NCBI GenBank assembly: GCA_030704615.1
Contig: CM060732.1
Location: 26,412,001 to 26,476,000, forward strand
Source: Takakia lepidozioides
Taxonomy: Eukaryota; Plantae; Bryophyta
Length of the DNA stretch: 64,000 nt
Reading direction: 5' to 3'
Shown here: positions 23,195 to 61,885 of the stretch, in pieces
Position numbering within the stretch: the first letter of the stretch is position 1
Layout of the letters: every line of letters starts with the position of its first letter
Position numbers and translations under genes: made by a program
The notes under the pieces: generated by a model
Told to the model about the DNA's origin: nothing
What the model saw: the letters and a program-made list of their open reading frames with translations, nothing else
Databases searched by the model: none

Positions 23195-23659
23195 CTGCAA
23201 TCCAGCAACTTCTCACGGTTTAGAAAAGACCTTTCAAAAATGAAGAGAAGGAAGAGATTGAAAGGGAACTATGTGGTTCAGGGCTGGATTAAATGGGGCA
23301 GCTTGGCATCAGATGGGCCTTGGGTTGCTGCCTACAGTGAAACAAAAAATATGGCATGCTACTGGAGGCATATCAATCGCATATCAATCCTCCTTGTCCA
23401 CAACTGACAGACCTCTAGAGCTGGCACCATCAACAATCCATATTTGTCATCTAGGCCATCATCATTGCCAAAGTAAATTTGCCCCTACCTCTCTTGACAT
23501 AAGATGCCTCTATTCTCACTGTGGAATTAGAACGGGAGAACCATGCACTGGTATGAACAGACTCTTACATGGCAAAAACCCTCGACAAACGGGGAGAGAG
23601 GAGAAGAGAATGGAGGTACTGCCGCCCTCGACAGTTGGTGGTTTTTTGGGGAAATGACA

Positions 23660-25990
23660 TAGTGAATGCCTATAATTACTTGTAGGGCCTCCCTCCTATG
23701 ACAACCATGCTGGGCATATCCTGCGATCATTGCATTCCAAGACACCACATCTTGTTCGGCCATATCATCAAACACTCCCTTGTCATCCTTGATGCTACCA
23801 TATTCAAAATACATGTCCACCCAGGTAGAGTTTAGAACAAATACCTCTCGTACTATTCCCATTTTGAGGCTGTCCAATTTCAGGGCTACGAAGCTCGCAC
23901 ATTCATTGCAAACGCAACCAATTGTGACCTTGTCCGGCTTCAACATCACTAAAAGAACTCGTTGTATAGTCGAATACCAATGTCATGAAGGGGGGAATGT
24001 ATCAAATTGTACACTTGAAGACTGCAAATAGGGATGACGATTACAAATCAATTCGAAGTCTGCAAACTGCATGACTCAATGAAGTATGCTACTTACTACT
24101 TCATGATATTTGCCCACGCCACTACATAGTGAAACTGCAAACTGCTTCGAGCTCCAGATCCAATATTTTGTCACTATCAAATGGACACATGTTCACATAT
24201 GACAAGTGCTTCGTTAAAGATAGATGGATGAGGTCATCCAATGGATGAACCCATTCATGTATATGCCTTAAGATGCCACGTGTAGTGATGTAATCATAGA
24301 AACAGAGATGTGAAACCTCCAGTAGTCATGTAGTCATAAGCTTATATGGCATGTCATCAATGTGTAGTAGTGGTGTAGTCATTTAGTCATAAGCTTACGT
24401 GGCACGTGTCTGACGTGTAGTATTGCGTATGACTACTAGTTATATAAACCAAGCCTATGTTCTTGGTCAACACTGTTTGACCGCGGCTCCTAGTCATGTA
24501 GTAAAACGTATGACTACATTAGATTAAAATATATTAAAATTCACCCAACAATGGGTTTCATCACTTCGTAGTCACACATATAGTCATGATTACCAAGATA
24601 GAAACATTAATCTGTAGTAGTGGTGCCAGAAGAGGCATTGTGGACTCCCTCTCTTGATCCGCTTCCAGAAGCTGTGGTCACGGTTGAGGTGCTTGGTTTT
24701 ATCAACTGTGCCGCTGCAGCTGCTGCCTTCAGTTGACCATCTACCCATGCAGGTTTCTTGTGGCTATTGATCCACAGGGAATCATAGGTAATCTTGTGCT
24801 TGAAATCTGGCCCTCTTGGAAACTCTGTACCCACTCTCTATCCCTGCTCCTTCAGCTATCCATGCGTCTGCACAAATCATGCATTCATCCTTGCTTTGCT
24901 GCTAGCAGCTGACAATAACAGCCTAGACACCCAACTTAGCTTATGACCCTAGTTCTTATGCTGAATTGCGTCTGTATTCTTTATAATCTAACAGGCATTC
25001 ACCTTTTTGCCTCGATTGTCTCACCATTGACTGGGGTCACAAAAGTATCCATTCCACAGCTTCTCCTCATCTCTATTACATACTTTCTTGTTGTCACATT
25101 GGCAGTATCATGTCCAATTCATTCCAAACTAGATTCACTCAACCAGCTAACTTGCAGAATTCAACATGGAAATTTAGGGCCGATTGTGATAAGAGGGAAA
25201 AATAGGGTGAAAGAGGTGCCTTCAGTAGAAATGTCTGACTTTATCAATTGTGCTGCTGCTACTGCCGCTTCCAGTTGACCATCTACCCATGTAGGTTTCT
25301 TGTAGCTATCCTTCCACAGGGAATCATAGGTAATGTGGAGCTTGAAATCCAGCCCTTTTAGATGAATTTGGACCCACACTCTATCCCTGCTCCTTCAGCT
25401 ATCCATGCCTCTGACAGCCTAGAATTCTACCAGCAAACACCCCAACCATACTGGTGTGGAGTTCTTCCCCAAAACACCCCAACCCTACTTATCACAATCT
25501 GAAATGCATCTGCTTCTCTCTGTAGTCCAACAGGCATTCACATTTTTGTCTCCATTGTCCCACCATTGACCGGGGTCGGAAAGTGTTCACCCCAAAGCTT
25601 CTCCTCACCTCTATTATATGTTTTTGGATACTTCCCTGCTGCCAGACTGGCAGTAACTTGCCAAAGTCACTCCAAACCACCACAGATCTACCCAACGACC
25701 TAACTTACATAATTCAATATGCATCTTGCGGCCGAGTCTGATGAGAGGGCAACACAGGCTGAAATAGGTTGAAGAAGAAGGTGCCCTCACCACATTGTCC
25801 TTGACCTCGTGTCCTGACCCATGGAGGATTTGACCGACCATCAACCCAAAAGGACCTCTTGTGTGTGCTGCTTGTGTCTGTAGTCAGGTAATGTCGGATT
25901 GGTCTATGAGATCGAACCACTACGGTGCAGCTGAGTAGGTAGAGATTGAAACACGCCTGCTAAGACCAAGCTGACTCTCCCTAGAACGGC
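23660..25990 (-). pseudogene. Pseudogene with three PDF motifs followed by a PLS-PPR fragment
   Basis: PDYRHK..EVL/WVDGRSNPPWV (25903-25815); EEKLWGEHF.DPGQWWDN|..LDFKLH..LW..PTWV; DEEKLWNGYFCDPSQW*DNRGKK|..PRGPDFKHK..LWI..PAWV (to about 24700). PPR motifs at 23945-23660 (DVVSWNAMIAGYAQHG). Interrupted by a CACTA block. Confidence 0.8.
24120..24622. mobile_element. CACTA-type repeat block
   Basis: Dense GTAGTCAT/ATGACTAC units, ending TCTGTAGTAGTG (reverse complement of CACTACTACAGA). No matching 3-bp TSD. Confidence 0.6.
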
Positions 25991-52500: not shown

Positions 52501-53855
52501 TTCACCTGGGCAAAATTATTGCTACGTAGTACAGAATAAAAAGGTCGGAGACATGGAAACTGGATAGTGCCACCAGGCCAGAGAAAGAGAAGAGGCAGAT
52601 ACAACATGTAAGCCATATAAAATCAAAGGGAAGAGAAAGGAACTTTCAATAGCAATAAATCAGGAGAACCCTCCATCTCCAATATGCAATGTCAGTTACC
52701 ACTTTTTGAAAAACAGGTAGGCAGGAAACCACCAATATACTCTCACTTCAAAGACACATTTTGGCCGAAGTTGTAGAGGCACATATGAACAAAACCATCT
52801 TTCATTTCATAATCCTGCAACATAGTCACCCAATTTCTTTCTGAAGGACCATGACGTGTACCTGGTCATTGATACACTTCTCCAGGAAAAACAACTGGGC
52901 ATCTAGTGAGAGGGTGCCACCGCCCAAATCTCTGCATCCATAGTCACAGTTGAGCTGTGAGCTTATGACATAGTGACGAAATACTCTGAAGAAACTGCAA
53001 AAAGTAGTGCAGCTTGCTTCCAAGTCAAGCCCCCAATAACACACCCCAAAATAAACTATATATGTCGCATTGCAGGTACACATTAACCATTGTTAACAGA
53101 AGTGAACACATTCGTGAACAGTTCTGGCAAAGAGGAAGTTTTGTACCTAGTCTTTCCTAGCACTTGCACTTACTGAAGTAAGAGCCTGAAAATGTGGCTC
53201 AGCTAGCTTTGGCTTAATAGAGGGGTCTTTACCATATCTGTGCTGAGACACAATGTTCATAGAGTGATGCTGATAATAATCCCATTAAAAGTTTACTTGC
53301 CAGATTCTGGATCCCAATACATTGAAACATTTTTTTTGTCTACATCAACATGAGAGCCTAACATCCACATTGCCAAGCAAAGACAATGAGGCTCCTCTTC
53401 AGACAACTGTTGTAGATGTTTTGTAGCACTGTATTACATCAAAGGGCTGATTCCCACGGCGAAGTATTTACAGATAGGCTTTTAAATAAGACGCCCAACA
53501 GAGCAGGCGGAGACCACCCCACCTCAGTAGATACAAAAGGGGTTAAGGTCCAGGGTTGAATTCCATCCTCAGGTTCCTGGTACAAAACCTGAGATTTCAG
53601 AGCACGACGTCGTGACTGTCTTACTTTTCATTGTCCTACAGACCAACACAGGAAAAGGTAAATCAGGGTGCATACTGAGCTCAAGACAACAAGTGGCTTT
53701 TTCACCGCTGGAAAAAACAGGGCAACTAAGCAGTGTTGCCTGGGGGCTGTGGACAAGGTGTGCACACATTACCTCGCAAGAGAGACAAGAACAGAAGTGG
53801 GTTCCATAACACGAAATGCAGCTAACAAGCCCTTCCCCCGCTGCATCTCACCCAT
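49569..53855 (-). CDS. EEF2KMT: FAM86/EEF2KMT-like SAM-dependent protein-lysine methyltransferase, 9 exons
   Basis: Exons 53855-53773, 52931-52862, 52459-52322, 52200-52031, 51638-51554, 51327-51271, 50878-50750, 50373-50303, 49929-49569 join in frame. Motifs YPPSRLY..LK (FAM86 N-terminus), EGATGCHTWPAS, LELGSGAG, LTDGD, GADLIYDP, VRNPDT. Confidence 0.9.
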
Positions 53856-54284
53856 TGCCTTCAAGTTCCAAGTATCACTGCTTTCTGTCTACGAATCAGC
53901 GCACCCGACAGAAACACTGATGATTTAAACGATTAGGTTTACAAGGAACCAGCGCTAATCCCCCGAAGTTCAACATGCCACTAACCGCACCCGGTACACA
54001 CTTGCTTCCTCCATCCAATGCCCCTGCGATTTATCCACTTCCTCTCCCTCACTCCATTACTCCTCCTTGCTCAAAAATTGCACCAGAGCCGATTGAGGCC
54101 AGCCTTATCATAAGCAGGCAATATACAAATCGACGGTATCCACCTCACAATTTCTGTCCCTGCATCTTCTCGGCCAACACGATCTATTAGCGATAGATTC
54201 GGGACGGAATCGATTGGTAAGGGTGGATGAAAGTACATAACCCATCGCTCCAAACCATCTCGCTTTTCCAAGCGGGGGCGGGTG
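53856..54284. promoter_or_regulatory. Probable bidirectional promoter region
   Basis: About 430 bp between divergent start codons. Depends on the inferred first exon of the PPR gene. Confidence 0.5.
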
Positions 54285-54841
54285 ATGGCAGCGCGTTCCT
54301 TTGCTCTTTCGAGCGCGCAGGAAGTGGTCATCATACCTGGCCCCCTGTCGTCTTCTGGTGCATCATGCAGCAGATCTGCCAGCCAGGGTGTGGAGCTCAA
54401 ATGGGTGTCCATCCGGGCAATGCCGACCCCAAGATCCTTGCGCGTGGTGACCATGACGCCTGCCCAGGATCCAGCGTTACCCAAGAGAGGTATATGCACA
54501 TCAATGTTGGTGTACTTTTTTGGATCTGTAAAGTGTTGTTGTGGGAGCGACCCAGACTCCAATTTAAATCCTTTAGTCCCAGTTGTTCATCAGGAAGCTC
54601 TGTAAATTTGTGCCGCAGCTCCTTCACTTCGGAGCAGCAATTTCATGTGGCCTCACGAAGCTTGGCCGTCATCACCAACTCTGATATATCAAAGAGGGGC
54701 TGCCCTTAAGATGTTCAAGGACTTCAAATTTTCATTCACCCTCTTCTGCCACGACTTGGCCTTTTGAATGTGAGCCTTCCAGCTGTAATCCTGGGACAAT
54801 TCCCAGGTATGTTTAAAATGGGGAAGAGATCTCTTTCTCAC

Positions 54842-54886
<45 letters not shown>

Positions 54887-57712
54887 TACTCGTTGTTTGC
54901 CGTAGCCTTTTGGCCGCGAGAGAGAGAGAAGTTCATCTCATGGAAAGCCTGAACTACCACTCCTGCTCTAGCCACAGGTCGATTAGGAGCTGCTAAGGGT
55001 ATATATGTTTGAACATTAGAACTCCTTAACAGCAACTGAGACTGTGGAAAAAGCTGGTAAGAGCTAATGTTCTTTCAGTTGTTGTACGCAGATCAAACTA
55101 TGAGCACAGAACAGCTCTGGCAGGACTTCTTCTCAGATCCTTCACAGTGGTGGGACAATAGGTTTGATAAGGTAAGGCTGTCGTCATTCTGGAGGTGAGT
55201 ATGTGAAGGAGGGCTTGTTGGCACTGCAATGTTTAAACTTCGATTGCTTCTCCAAACTCCTACATTAGTGACAACTTTCCCCTTGTCCTGGAAATGCATT
55301 CAGAGTGGTTCAAGCTGTTGTGATGAAGGTTTTTCCCCATTTGAGAGATGCATGGAGCTTCGGTGGTTGTAGCCTAAAGCAATGTCTGCTTAGCTTCCCA
55401 TTGGTGTTTTTCACAGAAAGGTCCGAGATCACCAGACTTCAGACATAAGCGCACAAGGGAGGTCCTTTGGATTGAGGGATGGTCGAACCCTCCTTGGGTG
55501 AAGGCAGAGCTATCTGCCATGACACAAGGTCGACCACAATCTGGTGATGGTTCTTATGCCAATGTACACCATGGAGCTCCAGCCCGCGAATACAACGGGT
55601 ACTGTTTTGATGATTTAAGGGTTCTAATGGAAACAAAATAGATTGGTACAGGTACTGAGGCACATTAGTGTTTACTCCTTTTAATAGGTAGAAAGGATCT
55701 TGTTCCCATGACGAGATCTTTATTTGAAAGCTTTGGATTATACTTGTGAGTTTGAGTGTAGGTTTCTAATTAAGAGTCCAGAGTCATTCAGGATGGCAGG
55801 GTTGCATGAGGCTCAGTTGTTTGAATCGGCAAGCCCCACCATCACTACTTTTCGAAGAGGAGCAAGAGAAGAAGTCAACAAGAACTCTTCTGGCATTTGT
55901 GAGGATGTGAGGAGACTATGTAAGACAGGACAACTGAAGGAGGCACTGCACATTTTGACCCAACAAGGCATGCGTTCCGACTCCCATTCTTACGTTTCGG
56001 TCTTGCGGGAGTGCATCAATGTAAAGGGCCTCGTGGAGGGGAAGCAGGTGCATGCTCACATTATACAGAGTGGATTTAAGCCAAACACCTTTGTACTCAA
56101 TACCCTTGTCAACATGTATGCCAAGTGTGGGAGCTTGATGGATGCCCGCCAAGTGTTCGACAAAATGCCTGAACGAACTAAGTGTTCTTGGAACATAATG
56201 ATAGCAGGGTATGCGAAGCATGGATGTGAGAGAGAGGCTTTCGAGATCTATGAGCAAATGATAAGGGAAAGGGTGATTCCTGACAGGGTCACTTTCATTT
56301 GCATTCTCAATGCGTGTGCAAGCCAAGGAGCGCTGCAGAAAGGCAAAGAGGTCCATGATGACATCTTCAAAGCTGGAATTGTGCCGGATATCAATCTGGA
56401 GAACACCCTTGTTGACATGTATGCCAAATGCGGGAGTATAGAGGATGCACGTCAAGTGTTTGACAATATGGCACAACAAGACGTGGTCTCCTGGAATGCA
56501 ATGATCGGAGGATATGCTCAACAAGGGTGCAGTAGAGAGGCTTTCAAGACCTACGAGCAAATGCTACGGGAAGGGATCACACCCAACAGGGTGACGTTCA
56601 TTTGCGCAGTCGATGCATGTGCCAGTCTAGGAGCCCTGGAAAAAGGCAAGGAAGTTCATTCTGCCATCGTAAAGGCTGGAGTTGTGCCGTATCTTAATTT
56701 AGAGAATACCCTTGTCCACATGTATGCAAAATGCGGGAGTGTAAAGGATGCACACAAAGTGTTTAACAACATGCTTGAACGGGACGTGGTCTCATGGAGT
56801 GCGATGATTGCAGGCTGTGCTCAGCATGGGTATGGTAGGGAGGCCCTGCAACTATTTGAACAAATGCAACAACAAGGGATCAAGCCGAACAGTATCACCT
56901 TTGTATCTGTTCTTTCTGCATGTAGCCATGTGGGCCTAGTGGATGATGGGTATCGCCACTTTGAGTCCATGAGTCAAAATTATGGCCTTACTCCTATGGT
57001 GGAACATTTTGGCTGTATGGTGGACCTTCTTGGCCGTTCAGGTCGCTTGGAAGAGGCAGAGGATTTCATTAACAATATGCCAATCAAGCCAGGTACTGTG
57101 GTGTGGAAGGCCTTGCTTGGTGCCTGCAGAATTCATGGTAATTTGGAGGTAGCAGAACGTGCAGCAGAAAGCATTCTCAACGATGATCCACAAGATGCTG
57201 CAGCGTATGTGCTGCTATCCAACATCTATGCTGCAGCTGGCAGGTGGGCTGACAAAGCAAAGGTGAGAAAAATGATGGAGGACAGAGGTGTCAAAAAGCT
57301 GGAGCCAGGACGCAGCTGCATTGAGGTCGACAATCAGGTGCATACATTTGTTGTAGAAGACAAATTGCACCCACAGATTGAGGAAATCCATGCTGAGCTG
57401 AGGAAATTGTCTGGGCAAATGAAGGAGGCTGGATACGTGCCTGACACGCGCTTTGTATTGCATGATGTGGAGGAGGAGCAGAGGGAAGTTTCTCTTTTCT
57501 ACCACAGTGAGAAGCTGGCCATTGCTTTCGGGCTTATCAGCACACCACCTGGAGTACCTATCCGTGTCATCAAGAACCTTCGAGTTTGTGGTGACTGCCA
57601 CATTGCCACCAAGTTCATCTCTAAGATTGCTGGGCGAACGGTTATTGTACGGGATGCCAACCGCTTCCATCACTTCCAAGATGGGATTTGTTCTTGCAAG
57701 GATTACTGGTGA
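54285..57712 (+). CDS. PLS-E1-E2-DYW PPR RNA-editing factor with an inferred N-terminal transit peptide and OSB-type PDF motif
   Basis: Last exon (about 55792-57712): L-S-P-L-S-P-L-S-P2-L2-S2-E1-E2, PG box (PGRSCIEV), HSEKLA, CGDCH, DYW*. Inferred upstream exons 54285-54489, 55092-55171 and 55417-55598 join in frame with GT-AG. The PPR-DYW part is secure; the 5' exons are inferred. Confidence 0.85.
54844..54883 (+). repeat. (GA)n microsatellite
   Basis: About 20 GA units. Confidence 0.95.
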
Positions 57713-57782
57713 GACAGGTAGAAAAGGTGACACGTCATTACATTTGAAAGCAAACAGTCAGGTTGAAATTTATACATGACAA

Positions 57783-58400
57783 CATACCAGCCTTGATGAT
57801 GAGCATGCACCTCTTTGTCCTTTTCCAGGGCTCCTATGCTTGTGCACGCACTGAGACCGCTAGTGAATGTGACACTGTTAGGGGTTACCCCTTCCCTTTG
57901 GATTTGCTCTTAGATCTTGAAAGCCTCCCTACTACCATCCATGATGAGCATATCTAGCAATCATGACAGTCCATGAGACCGCGTCTCGCCCGGCCATATA
58001 GTTGAACACTTGATGCACATTCTTCATGCTTGTACATTTGGCATACATACTAACAAGGGTATTCTCCAGACCTATACATGAGACAGAAATGAATGTGACC
58101 AGTGTCTGGCGTCAACCCTTCCCATTGCATCTGCTTATAAATCTTGAAAGCCTCCCTAAAGCACCCATGCCTGGTATGTCCTGCAATCATTATGTTCCAC
58201 GTAATCAAAGTCTGCTATGAGCCCCCCCTGCGAGTGTCTGTCCAATTAATACCTGTAGAGGATTGTGCCCTGTCCTCCTGTATGTGTCAAAACTCTGGAG
58301 TTTCAATCCTTTTCACTCATCATATCACACATCTCAAGCCCCTATATCTCTTCATGAGGATGGATCTCCTTCTCGCAGCACAAGTAGCAGGGTTAAGAAA
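57783..58400 (-). pseudogene. Inverted degenerate PPR fragment with its preceding intron
   Basis: Reverse complement of 57783-58070 aligns with 56395-56685. 58280-58375 resembles the intron end 55690-55791. Confidence 0.85.
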
Positions 58401-58641: not shown

Positions 58642-59904
58642 TCAGACCTCGCTCAGAGTGGGCTCAAACCGAAATGTATCTTCACTCAACTCTGGACCAT
58701 CATTAGCTGAACGTTCAATCCAGCCGCTTTCCCAAGATCCCTTGAGAAAGTTGTACTTCATGATGCAGTCGTCACGATGAGTGGTAATGAAAAGAACATC
58801 TCCATGTACAGCAACACAGGCCCGCTCAAACATCTGAAGATACGCTCTCATCAGCGTAGCCATAGGATCAGGCATCTTGGCGATCAGCGTGAACTCGTTC
58901 ATAGCTGGTTCATACCTTCGGAGGACCACAGGGATGGGCCACTTGATTTTGGGCAATGTCGCCTCCTCAATTTCATAAACCAGTACAATGAGAGAACCTT
59001 TGTAGGTCAGAAGGCGAACCCCAGCTGCACCCCAGTAGTGCGCATCACCAGGAATTTTGAGGTAGTCTTCTACAAGGCAGCCCTGTTGAACGTCAAAAAT
59101 GATGAGCCCAGGGCTTCTACTGTAGCTGTCCTCCACCAACATGTAAACGAAGTTGCCAATTGCGATGCTCTCCAAGGTCTGGCAGCTACTAGCTGTAGTA
59201 AAACTACCCCTGCGAAATGGAAGGACATCATGGGTAGTAGTCCATGCCCCAGTGGAAGAGTCATATACCATCTGTTCCTCCAGACCAAGCAAAACTACTC
59301 TGTACGTAGTTTTCTTTGAATCCATCACCACCACCTGTATCATATAGCTCTGTAAGGCCTCTTGACTAATTACAGGCGGGAGTCTCCTCCACGTCTTCCT
59401 GACCGGGTTGCACATCCACAGATGAGAACCTGCATCCAATATGCACAACAGCCCCCCACATGTCGCTACCACCTCCAGATGGTGATCCCAGCTCAAAGGA
59501 AGAGGAAGAGCCGGATAACCTGTAGGCAGGTTGAGCCATCTTTTTGTACCGAAATCATACATGGTGATGCGCAGGCCACATTCCGCCAGCTTGCCCACCG
59601 GATGAAGTGTCTGGAAAAGCTGGTAGGACTCGCCAACATGTCTCCAAACCTCTGCTTGCATGCGCATGAGGTAAGAAGACGAAGTCAAACACTTCCACGC
59701 TTTACTCACAGCTCGACACTGAAATACAGTTGAATCAAGCATTGGGTCGAGGTGCGCCACAAATTTCTCCAGCAGGTCCTTGGGTAGCGCTCCCCACACC
59801 CTTGGGTCCATGGTGGCCGTCGCAGTCCTACTTGACTGAGTGGATACTTCAAATGAGTACCATCGGGAATTCAAATTCGGATCTGAATTCTCCAAACCAT
59901 CCAT
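58642..59904 (-). CDS. Intronless F-box protein with a kelch/beta-propeller-like C-terminus
   Basis: MDPRVWGALPKDLLEKFVAHL..CRAVSKAW (F-box); VVATCGGLLC..WMCNPVRKTWRRLP; VYDSSTGAW. The true start may be the ATG at 59811. Confidence 0.88.
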   Translation of the reverse strand: MDGLENSDPNLNSRWYSFEVSTQSSRTATATMDPRVWGALPKDLLEKFVAHLDPMLDSTVFQCRAVSKAWKCLTSSSYLMRMQAEVWRHVGESYQLFQTLHPVGKLAECGLRITMYDFGTKRWLNLPTGYPALPLPLSWDHHLEVVATCGGLLCILDAGSHLWMCNPVRKTWRRLPPVISQEALQSYMIQVVVMDSKKTTYRVVLLGLEEQMVYDSSTGAWTTTHDVLPFRRGSFTTASSCQTLESIAIGNFVYMLVEDSYSRSPGLIIFDVQQGCLVEDYLKIPGDAHYWGAAGVRLLTYKGSLIVLVYEIEEATLPKIKWPIPVVLRRYEPAMNEFTLIAKMPDPMATLMRAYLQMFERACVAVHGDVLFITTHRDDCIMKYNFLKGSWESGWIERSANDGPELSEDTFRFEPTLSEV

Positions 59905-60714: not shown

Positions 60715-61325
60715 TTTCGAAGGAGCCTCTCCTCATGAATTGATGCTTCTTGAAGAATATGGGAGCTTTGAGATTTGTTCTATGAGTTTGATGTGTCAAT
60801 GGTTATGTCTAAGAGTTTTGAGACAAACAATCAACAATAACTCTTCTGGCACTTGTGGAGATATCTGCAGACTCCAGTACATATGGTTGTCTCTTGCAGG
60901 AGTGCATCAAGATGAAGGGCCTAGGAGAGGGAAATCAGGTGCATCCGTTATTCAAAGTGGGTTCAAGCCAAATGTCTTTTCAATTGAACACCCTGGTCAA
61001 CGCGTATGCCAAGTGCCAAAGTTTGGTAGATGCACGCCTAGTGTTTGACAAAATGCCTGAACTGTTACTCGGAATACATGATGGCAGGATATGCCCAAGC
61101 ATGAGTGTGGTAGGGAGAGGCCTTGGAGATCTATGAGCAAATGACAGGAGAAGGGCTGATGCCCAACAAGGTCACCTTCATCTGTATTCTAAAGGCATGT
61201 GCCAACCTGGGAGCCCTGGTAAAAGGCCAAAGGATGTTCATGCTGACATCATCAAAGCTGGAGTTGCACCAGATATCATTGTGGAAACTGCCCTTTCTGC
61301 CATGTATGCCAAGTGTGGGAATGTT
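60715..61325 (+). pseudogene. Degenerate PPR fragment paralogous to the 55.8-kb exon
   Basis: AACAATAACTCTTCTGGCACTTGTG resembles 55876-55901. TYGCLLQECIKMKGL, NTLVNAYAKC, PNKVTFICILKAC with frameshifts. Truncated by a LINE fragment. Confidence 0.85.
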
Positions 61326-61329
61326 CAGT

Positions 61330-61885
61330 GATCCCTCTTCCTCTCCTGAGAGATTGGCAGCAGTCTCTCATGTGCTTGGTCACATCCACTACTCCTTATC
61401 CGAAGAGGATCTTAAGCCTCTCAGCCCCTTTTTCGGAAGAAGAACTGGGGAAGGCAATTCGGTCTCTTCCTCCATTCAAATCCCCTGGCCCTGATGGCAT
61501 CATAGTGGATAGTTCTTCAACTGCATGACAATCGCTGGCGACTTCACGAGCGTGGCCAATGATATTCTGACTAAGGGAATCATGCCATCCCAGATATCAG
61601 AAGGTATCATTACGCATTTACAAAAAAGGTGATAGAGAAGTAATCTCTAACTACAGGCCATCACCCTGGTCAACTCCTCATACAAGATTTTCGCCAAGGC
61701 CTTGGCTTTTCGTTTGCAACCTCTCCTGCCTAAGCTAATTCGCCCTGAGCAATCCGGCTTCATGAATGACCGCATGATAGTGGACAACATCCTTTTGGCC
61801 TTTGAGGCTCTTCGCTCTGGAGAAAACTCAAATCAGCCCCTGGCTCTATTACCGTTAGACTTCGAAAAAACTTTCGATTCTATCC
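61330..61885 (+). mobile_element. L1-type LINE RT fragment
   Basis: PFSEEELGKAI..KSPGPDG, SYKIFAKALAFRL..EQSGF..DNIL, LDFEKTFD. Confidence 0.85.

Follow-up and report, generated by a model that had tools for sequence, protein, structure and literature searches.

PPR-DYW proteins are the best-studied editors of plant RNA, and are being engineered as programmable base editors. In this family the PPR array reads the RNA and the DYW domain deaminates a cytidine, and we take the organellar C-to-U editing factors of the PLS class to include, for example, PPR56 and PPR65 of Physcomitrium and OTP86 of Arabidopsis. A separate group, the OSB proteins (OSB1-4 in Arabidopsis), carries the PDF motif; OSB2 is presumably identical to pTAC9, as proposed in an initial annotation of the locus described here. 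The PDF motif of OSB1 is reported to be responsible for binding single-stranded DNA (ssDNA) (PMC6963530, PMC6451138). Here we describe a locus in the moss Takakia lepidozioides where these two elements are found together. The window, meaning the whole stretch of 64,000 nucleotides that was analysed (contig CM060732.1, positions 26,412,001 to 26,476,000), probably contains on its plus strand one nuclear gene with four coding exons, namely a possible leader (54285-54489) followed by 55092-55171, 55417-55598 and 55792-57715, which would encode a PDF-PPR-DYW protein. We consider the most probable layout of the product to be a presequence, if there is one, followed by a PDF module, a flexible linker, about 12 PLS-type PPR motifs, the E1/E2 motifs and a DYW cytidine deaminase, with a predicted length of about 796 residues including the leader, or 725 if translation starts at ATG 55100. 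Homology searches were run exon by exon, and statements on the joined model concern its lengths and phases only.

The coding content and splice contexts at these coordinates were confirmed. The first half of the PDF motif (...EQLWQDFFSDPSQWWDNRFDK) lies in exon 55092-55171 on the plus strand, flanked by an acceptor cag/AT at 55092 and a donor AAG/gtaagg at 55172. The second half (KGPRSPDFRHKRTREVLWIEGWSNPPWV...) lies in exon 55417-55598 on the same strand, together with the start of the linker (..MTQGRPQSGDG..); this exon has the acceptor cacag/AAA at 55417 and, ending in phase 2, the donor GG/gtactg at 55599. The main exon (55792-57715, plus strand, acceptor ttcag/G at 55792) contains the remaining linker, the PPR motifs, E1/E2 and the DYW deaminase, and runs to the TGA. 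The translations of 55094-55171 (QTMSTEQLWQDFFSDPSQWWDNRFDK) and 55417-55598 (KGPRSPDFRHKRTREVLWIEGWSNPPWVKAEL...) exactly reproduce those proposed initially for the two small exons, and the phase-2 donor at 55599 and TTCAG acceptor that had been suggested to join them in frame to the PPR exon check out in both site and phase. The introns are of phase 0 and then phase 2, the frame is kept to the TGA at 57713, and read-through into either intron leads to a stop within 8 to 14 codons.

By similarity, exons 55092-55171 and 55417-55598 (hereafter exons 2 and 3) are assigned to the PDF motif of OSB proteins. When exon 3 alone was compared to 1.84 billion representative proteins, 213 matches were found at E<=1e-3, of which 27 at E<=1e-10. 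These include a Chenopodium quinoa protein named "Protein OSB3, chloroplastic/mitochondrial-like" (E 3.3e-21, four PDF stretches) and proteins with a Pfam SSB domain (PF00436) followed by C-terminal PDF repeats, which is the OSB architecture (P0122, P0123, P0130, P0137 and P0143), and the motif had thus been correctly named. The PDF exons matched no Pfam family, owing to the fact that Pfam has no PDF model, and in the whole-protein homology search the 60-residue exon 3 gave no match, nor does any short protein share its words. With a profile built from 232 motif copies in 70 exon-3 matches that lack PPR motifs, the exon-3 piece scores 44.7 bits (profile positions 14-46), a value that is partly circular in that the training set was found using exon 3, and the exon-2 piece scores 18.6 bits (positions 2-14), which is not circular; these are the top two scores among 2649 six-frame pieces of the window. 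A full-length profile from 84 motifs (alignment A2) likewise matches both exons, giving 39.4 bits for exon 2 (positions 7-35) and 50.0 bits for exon 3 (positions 34-72). The two exons thus cover the PDF model from end to end, and represent two halves of a single motif that meet at profile position 34/35. Alignment A2 has invariant columns for D, R, K, P, F and W; these and the nearly invariant ones are all kept, amounting to 14 of 14 conserved PDF residues as judged by eye, and exon 2 is 65% identical to the corresponding part of a Diphasiastrum protein (P0185). The SSB/OB domain (PF00436), whose absence had been noted initially, was not matched by Pfam in any exon or open reading frame (ORF) of the locus.

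The searches with exon 3 also showed PDF motifs in other settings. The top match is a PDF-repeat protein of 730 residues from the dinoflagellate Effrenium voratum (P0121; E 1e-27, nine stretches), which takes the motif beyond the green plants to which reviews confine it. PDF motifs are also seen in long angiosperm gene models, such as a 1160-residue protein from Kingdonia with 12 stretches (P0124), a kinesin motor protein from Coptis (P0212) and an "Interactor of constitutive active ROPs 2" from Striga (P0266), which could be real PDF fusions or merged gene models.

The ORF at 55793-57712 has 639 residues and a DYW C-terminus, and by its domains is an intact PLS-PPR/E/DYW deaminase, as first proposed. 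Pfam identifies PPR_2 (8e-66), PPR (8e-64) and PPR_1 (7e-47) in seven stretches each, E_motif (8e-18, residues 448-511), Eplus_motif (3e-6, residues 516-540) and DYW_deaminase (2e-43, over the full profile 1-93). The PG box (57305-57325), HSE(K) (57503-57514), CGDCH (57587-57601) and the terminal DYW (57704-57712), all on the plus strand, are in place, and when judged by eye the array consists of three P1-L1-S1 triplets and then P2-L2-S2, or about 12 motifs. The top sequence match in the PDB is a synthetic PPR-DYW protein (PDB ID: 9kfx; residues 82-639), and further matches are to DYW domains (PDB IDs: 7o4e; 7w86) and a PLS9-PPR protein (PDB ID: 5iww). A search of the protein collection with the full PPR ORF found no near-identical protein, the best being 57-61% identical, which implies that Takakia's own annotation is not part of that collection.

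Four lines of evidence agree in joining the two parts, namely their co-occurrence in other proteins, collinearity, gene structure and RNA contigs. PPR arrays are present in 11 of the 150 best PDF matches (from Diphasiastrum complanatum, four Sphagnum species, Adiantum capillus-veneris, JGI metagenomes and one Logan contig), with the PDF motif always N-terminal of the array. The PDF motif is in turn present in 11 of the 120 best PPR homologues, among them seven from Diphasiastrum and one each from Ceratodon purpureus, Calypogeia fissa and a JGI cluster, and is absent from all Ginkgo, Cryptomeria, Taxus and Pinus proteins among these 120. A search using the PDF region of a Diphasiastrum protein retrieved 80 clusters, representing at least 70 Diphasiastrum loci; all 80 have PPR Pfam domains, a DYW domain is frequent among them, and each is labelled hypothetical. 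Proteins of this kind in public annotations include those from Diphasiastrum complanatum with locus tags starting O6H91_ (e.g. KAJ7517632.1 and KAJ7568880.1), Sphagnum BDL97_10G099700, Ceratodon M758_3G008300, a Calypogeia fissa protein and Adiantum GOP47_0023879, so that the co-occurrence of PDF with PPR and DYW extends well outside Takakia. The gene probably belongs to a large family of PDF-PPR(-DYW) proteins in liverworts, mosses, lycophytes and ferns. Other loci have this architecture too, and the family is already in public annotations, though without a name.

These homologues also agree with the window in detail. The Diphasiastrum proteins contain the stretch ..NP.WVK..M..G..QSGDG.. and then ..KLC.EG.LKEALH.L., the counterparts of which in the window are ..NPPWVKAELSAMTQGRPQSGDG.. 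in the last part of exon 3 and ..RRLCKTGQLKEALHIL.. close to the beginning of the PPR exon, and they are thus collinear with the Takakia gene across the proposed junction. The intron within the PDF region follows D.R..K at corresponding sites in the window (DNRFDK/KGPRS-PDF), Sphagnum (DHRLEK/VNARY-PDF) and Diphasiastrum (DNRYIK/KSPKY-PDF). In Sphagnum jensenii (L002) it is a phase-0 intron after DHRLEK, five residues before PDF and in the same place as 55171/55417, and the second half of the motif and the entire PPR array form one uninterrupted exon. In Diphasiastrum (L005) the exon ending ..DNRYIK/gt is followed by a 146-nucleotide exon that ends in phase 2 and then by the PPR exon, a layout like that of the window. 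The PDF motifs of Chenopodium quinoa OSB3 have no internal intron. A 4755-nucleotide contig from a public sequencing run (L001) provides a further example, with an unbroken ORF of 1371 codons that spans a presequence, two contiguous PDF motifs and PPR motifs. Taken with the RNA contigs described below, the collinear homologues and the conserved position and phase of the introns strongly support the earlier claim of one protein with both PDF and PPR-DYW.

The RNA contigs come from the same species and from two studies (X1 and X2). They cover the exons, and intron bins are at or near zero. We considered whether X1 and X2 might be genomic DNA and rejected this, given that one intron bin (54870-55056) has a depth of 0 and another (54496-54682) is fully accounted for by a single exon contig. 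Contig ends fall at 54489, 54769 and 55597, and adjoining contigs share exactly 30 nucleotides (X2 records 13/14, X1 records 5/6 and X1 records 1/2). X1 record 3 (289 nucleotides) matches 55427-55597 with no mismatch, then leaves the genome at the donor and continues for 118 more letters; if these are read as 55598 plus 55792-55908, the contig overlaps record 4, which starts at 55879, by exactly 30 nucleotides, and the depths of the two are nearly equal (20 and 19.4). From this arithmetic and from homology we infer that the junction 55598/55792 is used in Takakia.

A number of points concerning the RNA data, the linker and the 5' end nevertheless weigh against a single gene of four coding exons. 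The type of the sequencing runs is only guessed to be RNA, and the joint from 55598 to 55792 is not among the 15 joints listed. The joint listed between exons 2 and 3 (three contigs, GT..AG ends, "between: not known") runs from 55171 to 55421, four bases away from the acceptor at 55417 required by the homologues, and would shift the frame. Since its depth is above that of the locus itself, and exon depths of 1601 and 569 point to many paralogous contigs, this joint probably derives from paralogues, though a tandem acceptor at 55421 may be its source instead. Of the junctions proposed initially, 55598/55792 fits by arithmetic, and from the donor at 55171 the listed joint leads to 55421 rather than 55417. 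In addition, the homologues have a linker that is shorter by about 40 residues.

The remaining points concern the start of the protein. The first exon in the RNA contigs is 53773-54489 on the plus strand (X1 record 1, ending exactly at 54489, with a donor GT at 54490). It contains a candidate start at ATG 54285, giving a leader of 68 codons (54285-54489) that is rich in Ser, Ala and Arg, resembles a transit peptide as well as the presequences of Sphagnum P0284 and L001, and could join exon 2 in phase 1. Two further ATGs, at 53975 and 54227, precede it. An additional plus-strand exon, which was missed in the initial annotation, lies at 54619-54769 (acceptor cag/CT, donor AAT/gtgagc; X1 record 2). 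This record of 181 nucleotides consists of 28 unplaced letters and 54617-54769, which fits a 30-nucleotide overlap with exon 1 and a splice 54489/54619; its depth is 11.6 compared to 15.3 for exon 1. The exon places a TGA (54765-54767) in frame with ATG 54285 and has no in-frame ATG of its own, so that when it is included the main ORF starts only at ATG 55100 (MSTEQLWQDFF...), giving 725 residues and no presequence. Skipping it would let exon 1 join exon 2 in frame, for a product of 796 residues with the leader. Neither link to exon 2, whether from 54285-54489 or from 54619-54769, is seen in the contigs. The leader exon proposed earlier is thus present and of the right phase, but its join to exon 2 is not observed and the stop-bearing exon had been overlooked. 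Two readings exist for exon 54619-54769, an alternative 5' exon that is unproductive or a piece of the 5' untranslated region, with ATG 54285 and ATG 55100 as candidate starts of the protein.

In the X1 contig two differences from the assembly were seen, a C>A at 54294 (changing an Arg of the leader to Ser) and a 4-nucleotide insertion behind 54139, which indicate that the RNA sample came from another individual or allele. The intron 54769-55092 contains a (GA)n microsatellite (54838-54930), where the mapper cut reads.

These features of the 5' end give rise to the alternative that survives best, though we regard it as unlikely: that the fusion is real, but that this copy is mostly unproductive or has another N-terminus, with exon 54619-54769 stopping the leader ORF and translation starting at Met 55100. 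The protein would then lack a presequence and lie behind a long 5' untranslated region rich in upstream ORFs, as fits a paralogue heading to decay. The depth of X1 record 2 relative to exon 1 (11.6 against 15.3), the TGA at 54765 in an exon without an in-frame ATG, the upstream ATGs and the presence of a dead PDF-PPR copy and PPR fragments in the same window all speak for it. However, the coding exons are all intact, with every conserved PDF residue and the catalytic HSE and CGDC kept, and exon 1 could join exon 2 in frame to give a leader that is presequence-like, as in P0284 and L001. Additionally, contig 1 stops at a branch point, so that at least one other path should lead on from 54489, and Diphasiastrum genes of the PDF-PPR family also have many 5' isoforms.

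Less probable still are two separate genes, with a short upstream transcript that has only the PDF motif and a stand-alone PPR-DYW gene beginning at ATG 55793. In favour of this, the ATG lies directly behind the proposed acceptor, one base past it and in a good context (A-3/G+4), the joint across the boundary is missing from those listed, and many PPR genes lack introns. Against it, the homologues run collinear across just this boundary, where Diphasiastrum also has an intron of matching phase, and X1 record 3, which departs from the genome at the donor, has a length that fits 55792-55908 under the 30-nucleotide rule. Read-through past the donor at 55598 stops after 14 codons. The first 35 residues that follow Met 55793 are neutral or acidic and do not resemble a presequence, so that a stand-alone organellar editor would have no import signal.

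For the preferred reading, a single PDF-PPR-DYW protein, structure prediction gives some idea of how the parts might be arranged. An AlphaFold2 model of a Diphasiastrum fragment with PDF and PPR motifs (alignment A1) has a mean predicted local distance difference test (pLDDT) of 90.9; in it the PDF motif forms a helix, three short strands and a helix, followed by a linker with pLDDT <50 and then by PPR helix pairs. The PDF motif modelled alone (alignment A2) has a pLDDT of 90.3 and a predicted template modelling score (pTM) of 0.76. When the PDF model was used in a fold search, there was no Foldseek match at E<=0.001 and the best VIA-align Z was 4.6, so no known fold can be named. In these models the motif appears to be a small self-contained domain that is flexibly tethered.

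By analogy to the known families, the protein would be imported into an organelle, where the PLS array would recognise the RNA sequence immediately 5' of its target cytidines, one or a few in number, and the DYW domain would convert C to U by deamination. The PDF motif, as a small alpha-beta-alpha unit on its flexible tether, would be expected to add a sequence-independent binding of single-stranded nucleic acid, and may thus serve as an accessory single-strand binder in these editors. Its target could be nucleoid ssDNA, or RNA that lies 5' beyond the PPR footprint, and such binding would increase affinity or bring the editor close to nascent transcripts; a partner protein is a further candidate target. 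The specific proposal that the motif is a second sequence-independent grip, acting as an ssDNA tether to the transcribing nucleoid, as a built-in helper or, at the extreme, in deamination of ssDNA, is one that we put forward only tentatively; a nucleoid tether, a built-in cofactor and action on ssDNA had been suggested in the initial annotation. If it does tether the protein to the nucleoid, editing would be co-transcriptional. To our knowledge, the lineages with PDF-PPR editors lack the MORF/RIP cofactors of seed plants, and the PDF module could explain very large numbers of editing sites in lineages without such helper proteins. The experimental data on PDF come only from OSB proteins, of which OSB1 and OSB2 are reported, in work cited by reviews, to prefer ssDNA over double-stranded DNA or RNA (PMC4166229, PMC6451138), and an RNA-binding role for the PDF motif is thus not a given (PMC4166229).

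The rest of the window contains relics of similar genes, and with the dead copy and the PPR fragments set aside, the ORF at 55793-57712 is its sole intact PPR gene. The dead PDF-PPR copy lies on the minus strand at 23530-25959, and has three decayed PDF motifs, found by the PDF profile as pieces at 25959-25717, 25586-25488, 25394-25164, 25107-25024 and 24837-24610. One of these motifs has an in-frame stop between SQW and DNR (SQW-stop-DNR), and a PPR relic of 151 residues lies at 23982-23530. The first half of another PDF motif (..FLKDPSRWWDNRNRK, 21 bits) is found on the minus strand at 208-444, where the remainder of the gene would run past the start of the window. The intact gene is flanked by short, frame-broken PPR fragments, at 57706-58214 on the minus strand and 60822-61491 on the plus strand, which look like the remains of further PPR copies. 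An intronless ORF of 420 residues on the minus strand at 58645-59904 encodes an F-box/beta-propeller protein (PF24750, F-box-like). RNA contigs X1 record 8 and X2 record 16 extend from 57566/57573 through 58600 and beyond, and the tail of the F-box transcript seems to overlap the last ~140 nucleotides of the DYW coding sequence in antisense.

The value of the locus lies in its being a clean, intact and expressed example of this architecture, with an extra 5' exon and two candidate starts. Many natural editors in liverworts, mosses, lycophytes and ferns appear to have an accessory single-strand-binding module, which is absent from the sampled gymnosperm homologues; the use of PDF also extends beyond OSB proteins. 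The motif is also a small domain, confidently folded in prediction, that could be tried in synthetic editors. The initial annotation knew of no description of a PDF-PPR fusion, and our literature search likewise found none, though most subscription papers were outside its reach. A 2022 overview of the PPR proteins of Physcomitrium names as additional domains only RRM, LAGLIDADG, SMR, NYN, CBS and SAP, with PDF not among them (PMC9459714). The public PDF-PPR proteins are themselves labelled "hypothetical" or "PPR protein".

When compared to the PLS-class PPR-DYW editing factors, the Takakia gene shares the array of about 12 PLS motifs, E1/E2, the PG box and the DYW deaminase with its HSE, CxDC zinc ligands and terminal DYW, and would differ by an N-terminal PDF module provided by two small extra exons. 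With the OSB proteins of Arabidopsis it shares the PDF motif of about 50 residues, including the positions at which D, R, K, P, F and W are invariant. In OSB proteins, however, there is an SSB-like OB domain and the PDF motif is C-terminal of the OB fold, whereas here there is no OB domain and PDF is N-terminal of another domain; the motif is also split by a phase-0 intron in the window, Sphagnum and Diphasiastrum but not in Chenopodium quinoa OSB3. A third comparison is with the public PDF-PPR proteins. The PPR parts are just 43-57% identical, the Takakia linker is some 40 residues longer, and the Sphagnum gene, unlike that of the window, has no intron between PDF and the PPR array. What they would have in common is the order of presequence (a candidate leader in Takakia), one to three PDF motifs and PLS array, often with E and DYW, along with the intron inside the PDF motif and the signatures of the linker and the first PPR.

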